Shown: positions 27,130 through 46,229 of the stretch, in pieces
Layout: the number at the start of each line of letters is the position of its first letter
How positions within the stretch are numbered: the stretch's first letter is position 1
Source: Dimorphilus gyrociliatus
Taxonomy: Eukaryota > Animalia > Annelida
DNA: 64,000 nt
Reading direction: 5' to 3'
Assembly (NCBI GenBank): GCA_904063045.1
Contig: CAJFCJ010000012.1
Location: 2,046,001-2,110,000 of the forward strand
Notes under the pieces: generated by a model
Seen by the model: only the letters and a program-made list of their open reading frames with translations
Told to the model about the DNA's origin: nothing
Database searches by the model: none
Made by a program: the position numbers and the translations under genes

Positions 27130-30100
27130 ATGGGCGCCGCTAATGGAAAGCAAACAACCGACGATTTTCAATTAGTAGTACAATCAGATGAGATTGTTTG
27201 TATTCTGATTATATTAGACAAAAAATTGTATTAATCATTCTTATTTTATAAAGGACATAGCGACTTCAACAACTACTCGAAAGGAGAAGTTATTCTTTAA
27301 AGAAAACTATGGAAAAGTTGATGAAATTTCTAAGAGAATAGCAAAAAATTTCAATATTTATCAACACAGATCTAGATTAAATATAATAGAGGAGATTAAA
27401 GAAAAATGTATAGACGATATCGGATTAATACGTGGATTATTTATGCTATTAGCATCATTTGATTTTACTATTGTTCATAAAAATGAGGAAGTATTCGACG
27501 AAGATAGCTTTGGACGTTTAATACTTAATATTCATTATAATTTTCTTAATTTTGCGCATGGATTCCATCTTCTTTATAGGTAAGTTTAGGCCTATTAAAT
27601 TTGCAGTTGGATAATTGATATTTCGTATTATTTCATTTCTATTTTTATATATATATATGAAGTGAAGCTAAGCATTTATTCGAAAATCGTATAAAGTGTA
27701 AAATCATTTCGGGTATTACTAAAAATAAAAAATATCAACTGGGTAAACCACTTATCGATGCTGAATTGTCTACTCAATGGAATGCTGTATTAATACCCAC
27801 CGTTAATGATGAGATGGAATGGTTTTTTATAGATATTGAATGGGCTTCCATTAAAAACGTAATAAAAGATTTCGATTATTTTATGACATTGATATAAACA
27901 CTTTCAAAACTATACAGACTAAGAAAGAGGTAGTTAATGAATATTTCTTTCTTACCAACCCTGATTGTTTAATTAGTACTCACTTTCCTTTTGAATATCA
28001 ATGGCAACTTCTTCAACATGTAGTTCCAAGGGAAACGTTTCAGAATTATCTTTATATTAGAGAAAGATTCTACGATCTCGGTTTAAAAATAAAAGAAGGA
28101 GATGGATATCATAGAAATTGCGTATTGAAATCAAAAAATGGAAGAATAGTAGTAAAACTTGGTCTTCCTAAATACGGGAAATTTATTTATACAAGTTGTA
28201 AGATTTTTAAACTACCAACTTTCGATTCTTCGTCATGCATCCTAAGTAATTTTGATTACTGTTTATTAATATTGATTATATCAATTGTTGGATACTCTAT
28301 TAATAGGTCAAGAAAGAGATGGCGATACTATTAACATAACTATAGCATTTATTGCTAAATCAGCTCATCCCTATCGTCTAGATATCTATGGTTTAGATTT
28401 TAGAAGACATTCGAATTATGAATTATGCTGTAGTTATCTGCTATTTGGGGAAAATATAGATAAAAATCAACTTGACTGGCCGGATAATCCTGACATTGGT
28501 TATGGATTTCGTTTAGAGAGTAGAGCATTAGGCCTAATCCCCGAGAAGAATTATTTCTCTGAAATAAAAACAAATAATAAAGTGTTAATGAAATTTTCAA
28601 TGCACGAAGTAATTCATACTTTAGTACAACTAAGACATAGGTAAATATTAATAATAACAATAATAACAACAATAATAACTAATCATTTTAAAATATCAAT
28701 GAAAACAGGCAATATAAACCTCACGAACTATCTAGATTCATATTAGCTCTAGAATGGAAGGGAAGATTAGAAATTGCATTTAGATTACCCGAAAAGGGTA
28801 CTTATGCTCTAAAAGTCTATGGCTATGAAAAGGAAGACACGCTGTTAAATTTAGAAGATTCCAATATGACTGAAAAGAGAAAGAAGGAATTAATCAATAT
28901 ACCTAACATATTAAACTATAGATTGCTAGTAGACGAAAATTCGCCATTTAGTATATCAGAATTCCCAAAAGTATACAATTCGCAGGCTGGAGAAGGTCTT
29001 TATTCTGAATATTTTAAAGTTTTACCAACTGAATGGGTAGCTAATTTTATACAAACTCGTCATAAAGAATCACTTGAATTATCATTTTCACATATAAAAG
29101 ATTGCGAACTTTTCGCCGAATTTCACAATATTAATATAGCATCTACAGAATTAATTAATATAGTCGTTAAAATTCACGAAGCAGATGATCTAACGAAATT
29201 CGTATTCAATCCAAAAAAAAATGGAGAATACGCATTCAATTTGTTTGCTTGTGATAAAACTTCTAAAGATAGGGTATTACATCATGTATATTCAAAACTT
29301 ATACTTGTTTCGGATGAGAGGAGGATAAGTGTTAACGATTTTGAATCTTTAATTAATTCACGACACGAAGAGCTATTTGATTATATGGAAGATACAAGAT
29401 CGGATACCATCGCTTTGGATTGTGATAAAGCATTATTAATTTCACTTCAAAGAGAATGCACCTTTCATTTATGGACTGATGATAAAGTAAAATTTACCGA
29501 AAATCAAGTTTTAATCAGTCTTCCTTTAGCTGGAAATTATCGGATATCTTTCTATGAAATTTACAAGAATATTATTATCTGTAGAAAAACAATTTATGTA
29601 ACAAAAATTAAGGCCCGAGTAAGTAAAGTTCTAATGAATTGTACTAATTCTCCTTCTTTTTTAATTAATCTAGTTAGTTATCATTTTATATATTTACAGA
29701 TATCGCAATCGGAGGAGACAAGGTTAATGAATGGTAAGTATAATAGGGGAGGATATAGAAGATAGATGGGAAATTTAATAGTCTAAAATTACGAAATTTA
29801 TTTCGAAAACAGAGTCGAAAGATTCTTGGAAAATGGAGATGAGGAAAGCTCTAACATCAAGAAATAAGGATAAATTAGTTGAATGTATTAGAAGTCATAA
29901 ATTATCGAATCCCGAATGGAGTGACCTATACTTTATGGGGAAAAAATTATTAAATAAATTAGAGAATATTGAAATTTTTAAACAGAAATTATTAGATCTT
30001 GACGAAACTTCTATAGAAGATATAAGGAACATTCGTTCATTCGAAGATGAAAATCAATTTAAACTAATCTATAGTTGCTGTACAGGTTTACTCCTTCTTC

Positions 30101-30562
30101 TTGGATATAAACCTAAAAACTTACAGGTAGAACGTTTCTTTACGCTTCCTATCTATGTCTAAAAGGATGACTATACCTTCTTATCATCCCTTTTTTCTTT
30201 TTTATTAAAGACGTGGGAAGAAATTGGTAATTATCTGGAGTGGAACATCCTTAGTAAAAAGATTGAATTATTAGATAAAAGAGATATAAATGCTGAATTA
30301 GCGGCCAGAATTCTAAAAATAATATTAAATGATAATTATAACGTTGATAAAACTCTAATAGATTTTCATAATATGGTAATAAATGCTACAGAAAATCAGC
30401 GAATGTATGAAACTGTCGAATCAATACTCAATTGGGTAAGCATCAAGTAAAATAGATAGATCATTACTAATTGACAACATTAAATTATATCAAAAATATC
30501 TCCAAATATAGGTTTTGCTACTGACTGAAGAAGTCCTAGAAAATTACAAGTATTCACCGTAA
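27130..30562 (+). CDS. Hillarin/kyphoscoliosis-peptidase-like protein with a degenerate transglutaminase-like domain
   Basis: Manual splicing gives CKIISGITKNKKYQLG...QWNAVLI...WFFIDIEW...NEYFFLTNPDCLISTHFP and a C-terminal LLDLDETSIEDIRNI...GLLLLLGYKPKNLQTWEEI hillarin-type domain. Stop at 30562. Confidence 0.72.
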
Positions 30563-31114
30563 TCTATCTTCATCAAAGGTCTAAAATGATCCTTTAAAGT
30601 AGAACAAAATACAAATTAAAGGAACAATTCGGAATTGTTCTATTATAGAACATTTTAATCATTGTTACTTTGATAAAAATAAATTAAAGCGTTATTTGTT
30701 CGTTAATTTATTATTACTAATTTCCGTGTTTTTTAAATTAATTTAAAGGAGAAACTTTGATACTATTATCGCTTTTAGTTCTTAGTTTATGTTATGTGTT
30801 AAGTAGTCGGATGTCCTAGCTTCTGACTTTGGCGCCAGAAAATTGTCACCCCCGTTTTCTTTGAAAGTCTCTAAATTTTTATTGATACATTTATATAAAA
30901 TTATTTTTATATTTACAAATTTATTACATTGAATGCAAAAGGTAGCGAAATAGTTAAAGCAATAATTATCATCTAAAGTGATTTGCCTATATCGGATAGT
31001 TGAGTTGCAGAATTTTTCGCACTGGGCGATAATAAGCGAAAATAAATAGGTATGTGAACTTTATACTGTAAAGTGACCTAGTCAGATATATAAATCAAAT
31101 TTGATTTCCAGGAT

Positions 31115-34100
31115 ATGTTTAGGATGTTGAATAGCGTTTCCAGACTGAATATATTATCAAAACACATCAACGGGAACTTCTCAGTAAGGTTGAATAGTAA
31201 GAATGTATCATCAGAGAAATCCAAATATAAGGCAGTCATCTTCGACATGGGTGGCGTTCTTATTCCATCTCCAGTCGGATTATTCAAAAGTGAATTTGTT
31301 TATAATATATGAATCATAGTTTATAAGTTTTTCAACTTTTTATTTTACAGGCGTTGAAAGCCAACTAAACATTCCATCTCAAACTTTTCTAAAAGCTATT
31401 ATTAACGGAGGAGATGGTGGAGCATGGGCCAAATTCGAAAGAGGTGAAATTCTTCCCGAAGAGTTTACCGAACTATTTTCAAAAGAATGTTCAAAAGTGG
31501 TAATAAATGAATAATAAAATAGAAATAAATGAGGAAAATTCAAGAGATAGTATTAAACCGCTTTCTTTCTTATATTAGTCAGGAGAAAAGGTTAATGTCT
31601 CTCAGCTGGTAGACTTATTGACAAGTGAAGCGAACAACTATCCCATATTTCCCGAAATGAAAGACGCTATCGAATGCCTAAGAGCGGAAGGAATAAAAAC
31701 AGCTCTCCTTACTAACAACTACCTAAGTAGCCCTGCAACATCGTATTGTCCAATTGACAAATCACTTTTCGATGTGGTATGTATATATAGAATGTTCAAA
31801 GGAATCTCTCTAAAAATAATCGTCTTGGCAACAAAATTAGCAAGTCATATATCCAATGTATTCAGGTTGTGGAATCTTGCGTTGTGAAAATGAGAAAACC
31901 TGATCCAAACATATATAAATATACTCTAGATCAACTAGAAGTTGAAAGCAATCAGACTATATTTCTAGATGATTTGGGTATGAACTTGAAATCTGCGAAA
32001 TCTTTAGGAATAAAGACCTTAAGGGTAATGAATTGTCTATATTTGCTATTCCTATATGAATATTCTAATATGTATTATATTTTCTTTGTTTAGGTGGAAG
32101 AAGATAAATCAACAGTTTTGAAACAACTGGAAACGGAAGTTGGATTTCCAGTTCAAGGCTACGTAGCAGGAACAACATCAGTTCCAGAGAGATTAAAATT
32201 GCCAGAAAAGAAACTAAGAAGCTACTTAAATTGGGTTTTGAAAATACACTCGAAAGGTGACGAAGGTTTGAAGAAGTTTCATAACAGCTTCCTGATTAAT
32301 CTGTTTTATATGTTTATATATAAATTATAAAATTATTATTAAAATCTTTTAATTCTTACTGTTTAATTTATAGAGATGCCAATTGTTCGTTGCTTCGCTC
32401 ATGGACAATCGAATCCTACTTATTTTATAAGATACGCTAATAAGGATCTTGTTTTAAGAAAGAAGCCGGTAATTTGTAATAATAGACTCTATTTCTTATA
32501 CTTATCAAAAAGAATCTTTCTCTTTATTTAGCCAGGTAAAATATTACCATCTGCTCATGCCGTTGAACGTGAATATAGAATAATGAAGGCATTGAGAGAG
32601 CAAGGAATTCCCGTCCCAAAAGTATTACATTTAATGGAAGATACGGAGCTATTAGGTTTATAGATGGATATATATTTACTTTATAAAATAAATAGAAACT
32701 GTTTAAATAGGTACACCCTTCTACGTAATGGAGCACGTTCCAGGAAGGGTCTTTAAGGACGTTCTACTTAAAGACCATAGTCGAGAAGACAGACAGAAAA
32801 TTTATGAGGCCATGAATGACGTTTTATGTAAAATACATAATGTTAATATTGACGATGCTGGTCTTGGAGATTATGGAAAAAGAGGAGGTTACATTAAACG
32901 CAACTTTAATCGTTGGGTTAAACAATTTGAGGCTGCAAAGACTCAGGAAATTCCTGCATTTGATAAACTATCAAAGTGGCTAAGTGAGAGAATGCCATTA
33001 AACGAAGACTGTTGTGTTGTTCATGGAGACTTCAGATTGGATAATCTTATATTCCATCCTACCAAATTAGAGGTTGTGGCTGTTATCGATTGGGAATTGT
33101 CAACTTTAGGAGATCCTCTAACTGATTTAGCAACCAATTGCACTCCTTACGTCTTTCCTAGGAATACACCTGATCTTGCAGGTAAAAACTAGCTAAAATC
33201 TCTATTTATAAATACATTCATTCGCCTTTGAAAAAAAAAATAATAAATTAATTATTATTTAATTAACTCTAGGTTTTGGTGATTTGGACTTTGAGAGTCA
33301 TGGAATCCCAAGAATAGAAGACTACGTACAAAGCTATACAAAGAAGAGAAATATAAAAGATATAGATAATTGGGATTTTTATATGGCATTCTGTTTATTC
33401 AGATTTACATCTATCACTCAAGGAGTATATAAAAGAGCTATCAGCGGTAAGGATAATTAAAATTTGGGATAAATGAAAAGTAAGAGGTAGCATATCAAAA
33501 GTGGTAGGATAAAGGCTACTGACTCCGATCAAGTTGCGCAGGCGAATACAAATCTTTCAGCCTAATAATTAGATATATACCGAAATATAATAATGTAAAT
33601 GTATACATTAGCGCCATCTCTAAGTTAGTATAGAATACAATTTATCAATGGCCTAGTTAAAATTAAAAAAGGTCCCGTCCCATTTTTTAACTCGTGTGTT
33701 TATTGTTTGAAGGACAAGCCAGCTCACCGAATGCTGAAAAACTTGGATTATTTACTGAAATTTTGGCAGAATTAGCTTGGTACATAGCATCTAATAGTAA
33801 ATTACAACCTACCGCAATGGCAAAGAACTCTAAGCAGTTATCCGAATCCGAATTCGCTGAATTGTCCAAATTCGTTGATACAGGATCAGCAAACAGAGAT
33901 ATTCTTGGTAATCTTTATTATTATCATATATGATATATATACTTGTACAGAATATACTGTATACTAAAATATATATATATTTAAGTATGATACTCATAGC
34001 ATTCTTTGGTTTTTATGCGTTATTTAGGCTCTTTTCCCTTATCTCCTGCTGCTTTGAGACCTGAAGTCCAAGATTATCACAAAAGAGTTCGAAAATTTAT

Positions 34101-35502
34101 CAAAGAACATGTCATTCCATTTGAACAAGACTTTATGGCATATCATTCTCAACCAGAGACGCAATGGACCATACATCCTCGAATGGAGGAGTTAAAAAGC
34201 ATGGCCAAAGCTGAAGGACTTTGGAATTTGTTTCTACCAGTTGAGAGCGACCCTGAAAAGAAGTACGGAGCTGGATTGACAAATGTTGAATATGCTTTCC
34301 TGTGCGAGGAAATGGGTAAAAGCCCTTTGGCTCCGGAAGTTTTCAACTGCTCCGCACCTGACACTGGAAATATGGAAGTACTTATACGATATGGATCAGA
34401 ACAACAGAAGGAAAAATGGCTAAAACCTTTATTAGAGGGAAAGATAAGATCATGCTTTGGTATGACAGAACCAAAAGTTGCTTCTTCTGACGCAACTAAT
34501 ATACAAAGTTCCATAAGACGAGAAAAAGACTGCTATGTAATAAACGGCAGGAAATGGTGGACGTCTGGTGCCATGGATCCAAGATGTAAAGTATGTGTTT
34601 TTATGGGTAAGACTGATACGAGTGTCTCACGACACAAACAACAAAGTATGATACTTGTACCGATGGACGCGCCTGGTGTGAAAATTATAAGACCTCTGTC
34701 AGTGTTCGGTACAACAGACCCTCCACGTAAGTAGGCTCTTTTTATAGAAAGAGTAATGTAAGAAGACATCAATATTTTCTCTTCCCCTTAGATGGTCATG
34801 CTGAAATGGAGTTTGTAAACGTTCGTGTACCGCTTGAAAATATGCTTCTTGGTGAGGGAAGAGGATTCGAAATTGCTCAAGGAAGACTTGGTCCAGGCAG
34901 AATTCACCACTGTATGAGACTAATTGGGGCTTGCGAAAGAAGTTTAGAAATGATGATCGATAGAGTAAGTCTCATTTATCTATTACGTCACAACCCATTT
35001 TAACTACGAAATAAATCTTTATTCGATAGGTTCAAAAAAGAGTAACATTTGGTAAGCCTATCGCTGCTCACGGCACCGTACAAGCCGATATTGCAAACAG
35101 TCGTATAGAAATCGAACAGTGTCGATTACTAACACTCAAGGCTGCTCATATGATGGACACCGTCGGCAACAAGGTAATAAACTTTGTTTTTGTTTTATTA
35201 TACCTTTAAAGATATACTGTATATATATATATATTGTATACCGTATATATATTGTTTTTTATTATTAATAGGTTGCCGCACCAGAAATTGCCATGATTAA
35301 GATAGCTGCACCAAACATGGCCCAGGTTGTTATTGATAGAGCTATCCAAGCATTTGGTGGAGCAGGATTTAACTACGATACACCATTGCCAGCATTCTTC
35401 GCCTGGGCTAGAGTTCTTCGAGTAGCAGATGGACCAGACGAAGTTCATAGGAGATCACTTGCCAAGATGGAAATTAGAAGATCGAATTTATCTAAACTGT
35501 GA
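31115..35502 (+). CDS. ACAD10: Acyl-CoA dehydrogenase family member 10 (HAD + APH phosphotransferase + ACAD)
   Basis: HAD motif AVIFDMGGV and RKPDPNIY; [11 protein letters not shown] and [10 protein letters not shown]; [44 protein letters not shown]. Confidence 0.95.
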
Positions 35503-37950: not shown

Positions 37951-40900
37951 TTAAAAAGGAAAGTCATTGGCATAATTAGAAAAAATCCACTTTTTTTGGG
38001 GAACGTTTGTACATGGTTCCATATATAGACGGTTGTTTCTGCCAGCTGTTAAACATTTCCTTGAAGAAGTATCTTCCAAGTAACCGTTTCTTAAATGACG
38101 CCATCGTATAGCGTGTTTTGCTTCGCAATCAACTGTTGTAATTGAAATTCCTCTTGTCCTCTTCCCAATACATAAATCAATAGCTTCAATGAGACCATTT
38201 TTCGTTAATCTTAAGATTTGACTATTGCCACTACCGTGACAAGGATATAAGATTATAATTCCCTTATTGTTTTGAGTATCAATACAATTAAGATATCTTG
38301 CGTTTTTTATAGTTCCTGAGGCCATGGGATTCATTTCGGGTACCCTTATTTCTGGAACAACGTTCTTTAAATACCAGCCGAACGAATGGCATTTTAAGTC
38401 TTTCTTTAACTTCAATCTATCTTCAACGTTACCGAAAGACCAAGATTTTAATTCGGGATTCAAAGCGTAAAAGGCTTTCTTATATTTATCTAGCCAAACC
38501 TCCGCAACCCGGATGTTATTCTTCATAAAAGTCCTCATATTACCCTTTGGGAATTTGTAAGGTTGACTCTTTCTGAAAATATGAGCCACTCTGGAACATG
38601 GCATGATTAAAAGAGTACCACCGCACATCCATGTCTTGAAAGATAATTCTAAATTCTCTGCGCCCCAAATTTCAAGTCCTGGATCGTAAAAACCCAATCT
38701 TCGAAAGAAGGACTTATCAATCGAAAACAATCCTCCAGCCATGGTTGGAGACCTAATACTTTCCATATTGGATTTACGTCTTCTAACTTCGTATTGGGGT
38801 ACGCCTTTCCACCTAAAAGTCATATGCCAATCGAAACTACCCCTGATATTAGTGCCAGTTGGAATAATCCTAGAAGATAATAATTCCAGAGATAATCATG
38901 CGTTGACAAAAGAGTGTTTATATTAATCTTTTTAAATGTCACTTACTGAAAAGAACTAGCGTGAATGGTATCAATAATAGGACAAACGACGGTTGTTCTG
39001 TTTTTCCAGATTTCAAAGAGTAATGGTTCCAACCAGCCCACTGCACATTCGACATGGGAATCGAGAAAAGTAAGCGTCGGAGCTGTTGAAACTCGAACTC
39101 CTTCTAATCTGGCTCGAATTAGTCCCACCCTTTTCTTTAATCGAAGTATCTTTACTTTCTCTAGTTTAGACATATATCTATCCAGTTTGTCCTTAAGATA
39201 TTCTATGAAAATATTTAAAAATACGTCAGTCAAACAACTAATTTGTTTGTTATGTATAGAATGTATGTTAGTTGGCTAGATATGTTTGTTTTGTTTGGTC
39301 GTTACGTATATTATATAAACCTAATAACCTCTTTGACTGTTGTCGTCCACTAAAATCACCTCTTTTATTAATTCGGTGGGAGATCTATTTAATACACTAT
39401 GAACAGTTCTTAATAATGTCGACCAACTCTCTTCTGTAAAGCATATTATAACAGAAGTTTGAGGCAGTTCCTCGTAAGGGAAGAGCTGTTTCCTGCACCT
39501 GTATGTATATATAGAAAAAATCGAAGAAATAAGAACGTTAACTGATTCAAAATCTATATTTTACGAGTCTGAAGACAGCAAATGAATACGTAAAAATGAG
39601 AGAAGTCGGTGCAACAGGAAAAATAAACAAAAGTACGAATTCAGAGAGATGATTTAAGGAGAACAAAGTAAAATACAGACGGGGAGAAAGAGAGAGAGAA
39701 AGGACGAGAGGGCGAGAGGGAGAGAAAGACACACACGATCATAGTTGCACGTACGCTCAGAGACGTACAAGGGGAAACTGAGATAGAGAGCAACACAAGA
39801 AAAGATACGAGAAAAATTCAGAGAACGAGAGAGACGCCCTCGCAAATCCATACGTCTACGTAATTAAAAGCGTAGAAGAGAACGACCCACTTGTATTTAA
39901 TTATATGCAAGTATTTTCCTCTCTCGCCCCTCCGTCGCAGTTTGTCTCGCAACATGAGCCGGAGAGGACTGTTTGCTTTTTATCTCTTAACTTTAGCGAC
40001 GGCCCTTCCTCTCAAGTCGGAAATGGGTCCGAGGCAATTGGCAGAGTTGGCAGAAGCCCTTGAAAAATTCCAGAAGGTATCAGCGAAGGATCCGGAAAAC
40101 AGTAAATTGATTTTTATTATCTAATTTAATGACCCATTTATTTGATTAATAAAGTTAAAATCTTCTTTCTATTAGCAATATACTAAAATACTTTATCGGC
40201 ATTAGCTTACAATATACCATACTGCAAAGTTTTTTATCTCTTATCATCCCTTTTATTTTCGTTTATTATTTTTTTTTCATCTCTGTCTAGATACAATTGA
40301 TAAAGGACCGCAAAAGACTGAAGGAGGACTATCAAAGGACACTCTTTCTAAACTTATGAGCGCATTAATGGATGACCGCGATCGTCGGGCTTTTGATGAA
40401 CCCATGAAAAGGGATGCCTACGCTGATTTTTTTCGACGTCTAGAAAGTTTAAGGAGGGGTGGTCGTTTGGGACAGAAAATGATAAGTCTTCGCTGGGGTC
40501 TAGGAAAGTAGTTAAGATTGGAGAAAAGAACTTCTACAAACCCAGGATCCCTCGCATCTTTTAGGGATCTTTCGACGGATATACGATTGCTGACGAATTC
40601 GTTGAAAGACGCTGACCTCCAGCCAGCCTTAACACGTTCGTCGTTTTGGTTCGACGTCACACCACGGCCCATTTCTCCTGGACCGTTCCTATCGGCCAGT
40701 AAAGTCCTTCTATCCACATTTCTAACCTGTATTTATTATTGAAAATATTTCCGCTTTTTTAATACATATAGGGAAATAATTTACTTCTTCCCATGTATTT
40801 TCTTCTGCGAAGCTTTCCTCTTCAAAATTATTAGTCACAGTAGTAACGCTGCCTGATGCTTGTTCCTTTCTTACTACATTCTCTAGCGGATATACTCCGT

Positions 40901-40991
40901 AGAATATGTAAATATCGAGAACTAACCAGAAAGCACTTGTGACAAATATAGCCATCACTATTTTGGTTTTTGTTAATCTATCTCTAGCCAT
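37951..40991 (-). CDS. Polypeptide N-acetylgalactosaminyltransferase (GALNT family, GALNT5-like motif)
   Basis: Type II TM N-terminus, [63 protein letters not shown]-terminal ricin lectin domain. Exons include 40991-40785, 40726-40542 and one starting at 39498. Confidence 0.95.
39660..39840. repeat. Degenerate GA-rich tract upstream of the nested neuropeptide gene
   Basis: Interrupted GAGA runs seen directly. Confidence 0.7.
39954..40511 (+). CDS. Putative neuropeptide precursor (122 aa), nested antisense in the GALNT intron
   Basis: Exons 39954-40101 and 40291-40511 with a phase-1 GT-AG intron. Signal peptide [17 protein letters not shown], dibasic sites RR/KR/RR/RR, C-terminal amidation signal ...SLRWGL-GK-stop. 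Confidence 0.82.
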
Positions 40992-42768: not shown

Positions 42769-43765
42769 ATGACAGACAAAACAGACGCAAAACCTGACTT
42801 CCAACAGATTAATAAAAGATCAACTGACCATGAAGACGCTCGGTAAATATGACGTTTTCTTCTATTCTAGTCATCTTAACCATCTTTCCTCTACAAAGCA
42901 CATATAGGGCGGCGGGAGAAGATTTGCGTGTTTCTGATGAATACCCTATGACTAGTTCCAGAAGAGGACGATTCATCATTATAAACAATGTGAACTTTTT
43001 AGGAAGAACTGGAATGAATACTAGAGAAGGTTCAGATAGAGATGCTATCTCTTTGAAAATGAGATTTAAAGCTCTAGATTTTGATGTTGTGGTTTATAAA
43101 GATCAATCCACGGCCCAAATGGAAAAGATTTTCGGAGACGCTGCCGCCAATGTTGATTACAATAGGAGGGCCGATTGTTTTGGGTGTGCCTTACTCTCTC
43201 ATGGAGATCATGGAATTATCTATGGTATCGATGGTTTTATAGAAATAGAAAAGTTGACTGAACCATTTAATGGTGATAAGTGCAAAGAACTCGCTGGAAA
43301 ACCAAAAATCTTTCTTATTCAAGCTTGTCGCGGAACAAAATTCGATAGCGGTGTTGAGATTGCAGACAGTGAAGCAGTTAATCCAGGTGCTGATGATATT
43401 TTTAAAAATAGAACTTTCAAGATTCCTGCCCTTGCGGATTTTGTCTTTGCATACTCAACTGTGCCCGGTTACTTTTCATGGAGAAATTCTAGAGAGGGTT
43501 CATGGTTTGTTCAAGCTATTACTACTGTTTTTGAAGTAAGAAATAATAAATACTGTTCAATTGACTTAACCAACTAAAAATTCTTTCTTCATTTCAGAAA
43601 TACTGTGACGAAAAGGACCTACTCTGGATGCTTACAAGAGTTAACTACGAAGTAGCGTACAAGTTCGAGTCTAAAACGAATCAAGAAAGTATGAGGCAAA
43701 AGAAACAGATTCCTTGCATTACGTCAATGCTTACAAAAGACCTTTACTTTCGCCGCAAATATTGA
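42769..43765 (+). CDS. Effector caspase (caspase-3/7-like)
   Basis: Three exons; short prodomain, RGRFIIINN, REGSDRD, LLSHG, active site QACRG, SWRNSREGSWFVQ, QIPCITSMLTKDLYF. Confidence 0.95.
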
Positions 43766-43910
43766 TAAATACACAAATTATAGTAATTTATGAAAATCGT
43801 TGATATAATAAATGAGAGAGAGTTTGTATTGAAGTATAGTATACAAGCTCGACTTATGAATTAGTTCAATAATATTAAATGATTAAAAAGCCAAATGTTA
43901 AGATAAGTTT

Positions 43911-44871
43911 TTAATAATTCCCTGGTTTAAATTTTAATATCTTTGTCATATAACTCAATATAGATGGAATTTGTTTCTTTCCATTTAAGTTGGGATCCTT
44001 TGTGTTTGATTCATATGTAGCAACTTTTTCGCAGACTAATGCTAACATTTTCATTAAATCCATTGAGTCGGAATATTCCTGAAAGAAATAATTACTAGAT
44101 ATTTTTCGGACATGAATCATAAATTTAACTCTTTACCTCAAAAATTGTTGTAATAGCCTGTATAAAAACAGATCCTGTTTCATTTCTCCACGATACGTAA
44201 TCACTAAAGCAAGAATATGCAAAAATGAAGTCCGAAAACACAAGTTCTCTATAGGTTTCAGCGATTTCGGAAGCTCTGCTAATAAATGTTCCACATCCCT
44301 CCGATACAGCATCTGTACATTCAATTCTAGCACCATCATCGTATAGTAGTCCTCTGCATGTCTGAATTATGAAAATTTTAGGCTTTCCTATTAGTTCAGG
44401 GCAATTTTGACCATCAACTAAAGCGGCTAACTCATTTATTCTGATAATATTATCAGTTCCATAGACTGCTCCTAAAGTGCCATGAGTAAGGATAGCACAA
44501 CCGAAACAATCTGATTTCAAATTAAAAGACTTTCGTTTAGCAGCATCCTGTAAAATGCTTCGCATGCCTGATACCGTCTCATCTCTAAATTCTTTAACTT
44601 CGAAACCTAGACTTTCGAAAAGATTCTGTAATTTTAAACTATCACTGTCTGATCCGACTCGAGTTTCTTGTTTAGTTACTTCTTTAAAGTTCACATTATT
44701 TATAATGATAAACTGCCCTCGTGGCTTAGATGTCATCTCATACTCCACATGGCTTAATCTATTGTAAAGATATAAAAGACAATATACGGTATATTGTATA
44801 AGCTATTGTTATTACTTGCAAGAATTCTCACAATCAGTTAGTTTTATTTTGTCGAATAGTTTGTCATTCAT
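43911..44871 (-). CDS. Second effector-type caspase with QTCRG active-site variant
   Basis: Exon from ATG 44871 (MNDKLFDK) splices in phase 2 to ...EYEMTSKPRGQFIIINN, RVGSDSD, ILTHG, IIQTCRG, SWRNETGSVFIQ; last exon KKQIPSILSYMTKILKF. Confidence 0.88.
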
Positions 44872-45108
44872 ATCCTGTTTAGCTGAAAGATCGAAACGAA
44901 TATTAGCTGAAAAATTAAGAAATGGCTGCTACTTTCGTTTTACATTTATAGGTGTATTTATAGGTGTCACTAGTGTATACAGAATATTCGCTTGTTTCAT
45001 TAATGAAAATTTCCTTTTTTTAATTATTTGTTTGTAAATTCATTTCAGACATGATTTATTCAAAGATAATTTAAGCAAGCGATTATGAATGCTTTTTTTT
45101 CTATCAAC

Positions 45109-46229
45109 TTAAACGCAGAAGGCACCCTGTGGAATTACTGGTGAGGCAGTCAGATCAATATTCATCTGCTTCATAAAAACTGCTTGTTCGAATAAGAATT
45201 CGTAGCATTCTGACCTGTTAATACAAGAAGGACTAATTCAAAATTTTGTTCTTTTGTTTTTTATAAAAAATAAATTTCGGGTTTACATAGTTTTTGCTTC
45301 TTGCCAGGTAGATCCCCAAATATAAAATCCGTGTCTTCTGACAAGCACACAGCACGTATCTGGATAAGCTTTCATTGCTCGTGCCATTACCTCTTCTAGT
45401 TCGCATTCAAACGGTGTATTCTCAATAATAGGTACAGTAATAGTATCATGATAATTATATTTTTTTCCTGAAAAATAGCTTAGTCAACACAAATCAACAT
45501 ACAAAGTTAAGTGATTAGAAAAGTTTACCAGTAGAGTCTCTTTTCAATCCCTTAATCATTTCAATATGGGATATTTTAAATTCATAGCCTGGTGTTATCA
45601 AGGTTACTTTAACAGCAGCTGCAGAGTGAGCATGAATAATAGCTCCAGCGTCTACGAATAAGACAGGCAAAGATAATATATAAATATATATTGTTTACAT
45701 AAAGTACTTAAATTTTACTTACTTCTTAAGCGGTACGCATTCATAAAGAGTGGTGTACATTGACTTTTCTTTAATTTTTTCTCAGATGGAGGAAGATATA
45801 TATCTTTTCCTTCTATATCTTGAACAAATATATCTTCTAGCTGTATTTATTTATACAGAATAATATATTAATAGATTTAATTGGTATTTAATGAATATGT
45901 GCTAGATGCTAACTTCAATTTTCTCTTTTTGAACTCCAGATGGAGCAATGAAAATTTCATTTCTAAAATATATAAAGGATATCAAACTGTATTTTTCAAT
46001 ACTTCATTCCATACCCTTTACGAATACTTATTCCTCCACCAGTTCCAGTGCACCAGCCGATAGAGTAGAAAAGTTTACACAAGTCGATAATTAGTTGTTT
46101 TGGGTCTTCTTCATTTGGTATGGCAGTATTTCCCTTGAAAAAAATTAAGCTTGATAGCCAGTTGTTTCTTATTATCATCAGCTTTATACTTACGATGCTT
46201 CCTTTATTTTTTGAGTCATTACTATCCAT
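45109..46229 (-). CDS. APIP: Methylthioribulose-1-phosphate dehydratase (APAF1-interacting protein, MtnB)
   Basis: [91 protein letters not shown]. Confidence 0.93.

Follow-up and report, generated by a model that had tools for sequence, protein, structure and literature searches.

SLRFamide precursors have been described from annelids, in Platynereis (PMC3890597), Urechis (MT162133; PMC7737342) and Capitella (ELU08166; PMC7737342), and from bivalves, in the oyster (Cragi-SLRFamide; PMC8398477) and the scallop ('LRF'; PMC5996578), and in the oyster both long and short amidated forms were recovered by mass spectrometry (PMC8398477). The oyster SLRFamide has been called bivalve-specific (PMC8398477) and that of Platynereis annelid-specific (PMC3890597); since both carry an LRFR[DE]L block and a V[KR][LM]xSLRF end, they look like one lophotrochozoan family. 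A single long peptide per precursor is also the arrangement of QRFP/26RFa in chordates, and QRFP-type receptors occur in lophotrochozoans, with no ligand identified for them as of the same publication (PMC4062910).

A DNA-pattern scan of metagenome assemblies added two genuine SLRFamide genes, from hosts that we infer by motif identity to be annelids; a third match (L007) was discarded as a chance match.

L008, 9418-11900, minus strand: SLRFamide gene with three coding exons and phase-1 introns
L009, 526-1745: SLRFamide gene in a metagenome assembly

SLRFamide genes have one phase-1 intron immediately ahead of the GLGSLL block and another three codons ahead of the KR, and both the upstream LRFRD block and the SLRF-amide end are nearly invariant across other annelids. 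The L008 gene, the one SLRFamide locus with a visible neighbour, is in tail-to-tail arrangement with a gene for an Abl-like tyrosine kinase and does not lie within a polypeptide GalNAc-transferase (GALNT) gene.

The gene considered here lies antisense within a GALNT gene of Dimorphilus gyrociliatus, in the window analysed (the whole stretch of 64,000 nt, to whose positions the following coordinates refer). It is a real, expressed and conserved gene of the prohormone type that specialists have overlooked: its peptide is missing from the published D. gyrociliatus neuropeptide list, as is SLRFamide. The neuropeptides of this species had been catalogued as a complete and canonical set, to which the gene is an addition.

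37951..40991, minus strand: host GALNT gene, 578 aa, with five coding exons (40991-40785, 40726-40542, 39498-39329, 39202-38947 and 38869-37951)
39499..40541, minus strand: GALNT host intron 2, 1043 nt, GT..AG
39954..40101, plus strand: nested coding exon 1, residues 1-49 plus 1 nt, with the predicted signal peptide and the start of the pro-region (dN/dS 0.13 versus the second species)
40102..40290, plus strand: intron of the nested gene, 189 nt, phase 1, GT..AG (junction in runs X1, X6 and X3; same place and phase in the second species)
40291..40511, plus strand: nested coding exon 2, with the spacer helix, cleavage sites, predicted mature peptide, Gly-Lys and stop (dN/dS 0.11)

The five-exon GT..AG model of the host yields exactly 578 aa, with the Pfam domains Glycos_transf_2, Glyco_transf_7C and Ricin_B_lectin, and its introns measure 58, 1043, 126 and 77 nt against a genome median of 66 nt, so that intron 39499-40541 is indeed far beyond the local norm, as the initial annotation had remarked. 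Its further claim, that this intron contains a complete two-exon gene on the opposite strand, agrees both with the translation (122 aa, ending in G-K-stop) and with the public annotation, which places DgyrCDS9085 at 39954-40511 (+) within the 578-aa GALNT gene on the minus strand. Since the gene is publicly annotated, the observation was right but the description of it as hidden was wrong; a search with exon 2 retrieves, at 100% identity, the deposited D. gyrociliatus protein DgyrCDS9085, 122 aa, unnamed and devoid of a Pfam domain. A whole coding sequence nested antisense in one enlarged host intron is a common arrangement in animals, which this locus shares. We regard the nesting itself as ordinary, and probably incidental to a compact genome.

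The nested gene is transcribed, spliced and conserved as a protein. The splice junction 40101/40291, which had been proposed as a check, is present in three sequencing runs: contigs of X1 (from a marine metatranscriptome) and X6 (of unrecorded type, its sequence identical to that of the window) skip 40102-40290 at GT..AG, and X3 (about 92% identical, and RNA by guess) has the same joint with one base substituted, while a separate X3 contig skips the 1043-nt host intron. The joined, intron-less contig forms in X3 and X6 imply RNA, and because GT..AG reads on the plus strand, the spliced nested RNA is antisense to GALNT. The orthologue in a second, related species, carried by five contigs, occupies the corresponding GALNT intron in the same orientation and has a phase-1 GT..AG intron at the same position. 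Synonymous divergence between the two is 0.49-0.68, and the dN/dS values of both exons indicate purifying selection; the other five frames of exon 2 contain stops in both species.

The transcript probably does not stay within the intron, and conserved non-coding sequence flanks the coding region.

40512..40797, plus strand: putative 3' UTR, overlapping GALNT exon 2 and intron 1 in antisense (from contigs and a polyA-like hexamer)
39800..39953, plus strand: conserved non-coding block directly upstream of the ATG, a likely promoter or 5' UTR (82-94% identity to the second species)
39499..39650, no strand assigned: another conserved block of non-coding sequence (86-94% identity to the second species), where the host intron ends in its acceptor

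Only 30 nt separate the nested stop from GALNT exon 2, the first polyA-like hexamer is at 40761, and contigs that carry the nested splice junction extend into the GALNT exon (to 40569 in X3, beyond 40900 in X6); one X3 contig reads through host intron 1 without splicing, to its end at 40797. Given these features, from contigs that carry neither strand nor transcript ends, the nested 3' UTR probably overlaps the host exons in antisense. Unlike plain intron-nested genes, the two would then be likely to form a natural antisense pair, through which gene packing in a genome of 74 Mb can be tested. Both conserved blocks are more identical between the species than the flanking intron sequence; that at 39499-39650 lies upstream of the nested ATG, by 300 nt, and might serve the nested gene as promoter or enhancer, or be a splicing element.

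The precursor has the anatomy of an amidated neuropeptide precursor, and its predicted parts are as follows.

39954..40004, plus strand: predicted signal peptide, residues 1-17, with a basic n-region, a hydrophobic core (hydropathy peak 2.3) and A-x-A before Leu-Pro; kept in the second species
40383..40388, plus strand: RR, residues 81-82, probably not an essential cleavage site; absent in the second species
40407..40412, plus strand: KR, residues 89-90, the main predicted convertase site; invariant in both species and aligned with the KR of SLRFamide genes
40413..40502, plus strand: predicted 30-residue amidated peptide, residues 91-120, with an invariant 10-residue core and the tail LRWGL
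40458..40502, plus strand: possible short form, residues 106-120, after the conserved RR 104-105, by analogy with oyster SLRFamide
40503..40511, plus strand: Gly-Lys-stop amidation signal; invariant in both species

Hydropathy and the A-x-A site point to a signal peptide in both species, and a conserved dibasic site and Gly-basic amidation signal flank a conserved peptide. Dibasic pairs occur at residues 81-82, 89-90, 98-99 and 104-105. Since KR 89-90 is invariant while RR 81-82 is absent from the second species, we favour the former as the main cut, which would release a 30-residue amide (29 residues in the second species). RR 98-99 is followed by Leu, and Leu after RR disfavours cleavage; RR 104-105, followed by Gly, could yield a 15-mer, and a further KR in the second species could give an 8-mer, the predicted forms having in common the element I-x-L-R-W-G-L-amide. 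The prohormone features named in the initial annotation (signal peptide and terminal Gly-Lys) are thus supported by a signal-like N-terminus, a conserved KR, a conserved Gly-Lys-stop, purifying selection and weak language-model neighbours. Its cluster of dibasic convertase sites holds for KR 89-90, the first RR being species-specific, and its 30-mer ending in RWGL-NH2 gains support from the KR and Gly-Lys conserved in two species, processing being predicted. Lack of a conserved C-terminus in relatives had been named as a ground for rejecting the gene; LRWGL and G-K-stop are invariant in the second species.

By established prohormone biology, the signal peptide would send the precursor into the secretory pathway, a convertase would cut at the conserved KR, a carboxypeptidase would remove the last Lys, and an amidating enzyme would convert the Gly to an amide, giving a 30-residue helix-plus-tail peptide that ends in I-x-L-R-W-G-L-amide; a second cut at RR may give a shorter ...LRWGL-amide form. 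The receptor of the peptide would be a G-protein-coupled one, bound through the invariant LRWGL-amide end.

We suggest, with about even confidence, that the nested gene is a neuropeptide-type prepropeptide gene strongly derived from the annelid/bivalve SLRFamide gene. As in SLRFamide precursors, a predicted signal peptide, a long spacer and a KR precede one terminal amidated peptide of about 30 residues and Gly-basic-stop (30 and 29 aa in the two species, 31 and 32 aa in L008 and L009), and within the peptide a helix with L-x-x-L-[KR] lies 12-15 residues before a G-x-[KR]-[LM]-x-S-L-R-aromatic-G tail. The tail agrees with the consensus V-[KR]-[LM]-x-S-L-R-F-G, drawn from published SLRFamide members only, at 6/8 positions (5/8 for the terminal copy in the second species), and a six-frame search of the whole window gave only two 6/8 matches, both inside this peptide. 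In shuffles the match near the end has p 5e-4, or 3e-5 with the upstream LxxL[KR], for a family that was chosen after seeing the sequence. Aligned on the KR, the gene and SLRFamide genes are 35-38% identical and share L, L, R, G, L, R and G, whereas local and global alignments give shuffle p values of 0.006-0.05, 2% of real 30-mers score equally well, and the hhalign probability is 4.9%, SLRFamide having been selected post hoc from about 100 known precursors. Full alignments used L008 and L009, and the published Platynereis, Urechis and bivalve precursors were compared through short consensus classes.

Several features set the nested gene apart. Its peptide ends in SLRWGL-amide (RLRWGL-amide in the second species) instead of SLRF-amide, with W for F and two extra residues, so that the C-terminal SLRF-amide is lacking in both species; the upstream GLGSLLLKNLRFRD block (LRFRD) is not recognizable in it (best 4/10 positions, alignment p 0.55-0.96); and extra RR pairs lie within the peptide. 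It has one intron at another position instead of two, in phase 1 and 39 codons before the KR, upstream of the spacer helix, with no codon match and none before the KR, in a genome known to have lost introns; and it is nested in a GALNT intron. Because both the SLRF-amide end and the LRFRD block fail, we do not file the gene as an SLRFamide member and label it SLRFamide-like, SLRFamide being, as judged from sequence, the closest described family. The initial annotation could place the gene in no known family; the RWGL-amide end bears this out as far as the literature searched goes, but it had missed SLRFamide, with its single terminal peptide and similar tail.

Two copies of [KR]-[LM]-x-S-L-R-x-G occur in the predicted mature peptide, at 40434-40460 and 40473-40499. 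Each agrees with the SLRFamide tail at 6/8 positions (6/8 and 5/8 in the second species), which is rare in shuffles. Urechis SLRFamide has a similar L-x-S-L-[KR] echo.

A serious though doubtful alternative is that the gene represents an undescribed family, so far found only in dinophilid worms, with the same processing and no relation to SLRFamide, the tail likeness being due to chance and a common prohormone layout. Exon-by-exon searches of 1.84 billion representatives and 5.8 billion clusters find only the gene itself and the second species, and metagenome contigs yield none, but short peptides are invisible to such searches at this database size. We could not find an amidated RWGL end described in the accessible parts of the literature searched and of the supplements to the Platynereis, Urechis and nemertean/brachiopod (spiralian) surveys. 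The failure of both SLRFamide hallmarks also speaks for a family of its own, whereas the layout, the length of the peptide, the spacing of the helix and the tail each lead to SLRFamide, itself missing from the list for this species. Whether the nested gene takes the place left empty by SLRFamide, with an unusually altered peptide, or stands for a small new family, it provides a concrete candidate ligand for orphan annelid receptors, including those of the QRFP type (whose protostome ligand is given as unidentified in reviews).

That the same kind of precursor releases a secreted, cationic amidated peptide with a non-neural role, in antimicrobial defence or as a gland product, appears improbable. 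The predicted 30-mer has seven basic and three acidic residues, no cysteine and an amphipathic stretch, as such a peptide might; yet the spacer is neutral (12 basic, 14 acidic residues) and no acidic pro-piece is found, the locus holds one copy of the gene, which is under purifying selection, and the language-model neighbours, though weak, are peptide hormones. For exon 2, seven of the ten matches listed are peptide-hormone precursor families, at scores of 0.80-0.83, which we take as a lead; ESM Atlas matches for the nested gene were all below 0.9, and the Atlas model of the precursor has a pLDDT of 0.49.

HanSolin is an RW-amide of insects. It is highly improbable that the nested gene is a divergent member of a short-amide family, either allatostatin-A/buccalin or one of the RW-amides (luqin, RGWamide, HanSolin). 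The GL-amide end and the LRWG motif speak for these families; the initial annotation, which was reminded of allatostatin-A/buccalin by GL-amide and of RW-amides by LRW, found the single-copy layout to fit neither. Both leads fit less well than SLRFamide: multi-copy precursors of allatostatin-A and RGWamide, different in layout, are already known from D. gyrociliatus, luqin stands directly after the signal peptide and has a Cys-bearing tail, and W is not the amidated residue of the nested peptide. Allatostatin-A/buccalin was rejected because multiple short GL-amide copies are lacking (a single copy here, and a separate allatostatin-A gene is listed for the species), and luqin and the RW-amides because the nested peptide is terminal, ends in Leu-amide and has no Cys. 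QSGamide/iPTH was set aside, as neither its C-terminal extension nor its Cys pair before the amide is found, the Platynereis and oyster sequences being unlike by inspection, and LXRX and FRWamide on layout and sequence.

Although searches of Pfam, PDB structures and metagenome proteins gave no match for the nested gene, the idea that it is an artefact of annotation, or a frame open by chance on the intron's antisense strand, is effectively refuted by the gene's own plus-strand GT..AG splicing in three runs, by the frame, stop and intron kept in the second species despite a synonymous divergence of 0.5-0.7 (dN/dS about 0.12), and by the stops in the other exon 2 frames.

Returning to the SLRFamide-like reading, we have considered that the nested gene is the dinophilid SLRFamide, that SLRFamide is the ligand of the lophotrochozoan QRFP-type receptor, and that the RF-amide end has been replaced by RWGL-amide, a combination that we hold to be a long shot. 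SLRFamide and QRFP presumably resemble each other in a single long terminal peptide, a helix and an S-x-R-F-amide end, a likeness that is our own lead; no literature linking the two was found, and tests against Pfam, PDB and the Atlas gave no support. The nested gene shares with QRFP/26RFa one long peptide per precursor and a weak language-model neighbour at 0.80. Unlike QRFP/26RFa (a single peptide of about 25 residues with an RF-amide end; Pfam RFamide_26RFa), its peptide lacks RF-amide, and the family was rejected on this ground; neither the nested gene nor SLRFamide gave a match in Pfam or PDB at E up to 10, in searches whose filters drop weak matches. If true, the QRFP reading would make the gene a natural case in which to test how ligand and receptor co-evolve within an ancient bilaterian system.

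Elsewhere in the window, at about 28000-35500 (L006:1-1549), an annotated model of 1964 aa combines a KY-type Ig-like domain with domains of hydrolase, phosphotransferase and acyl-CoA dehydrogenase type, and is probably two neighbouring genes merged. At 42769-46229, a plus-strand caspase gene precedes a model on the minus strand that has both aldolase class II and caspase domains and may be an annotation fusion.
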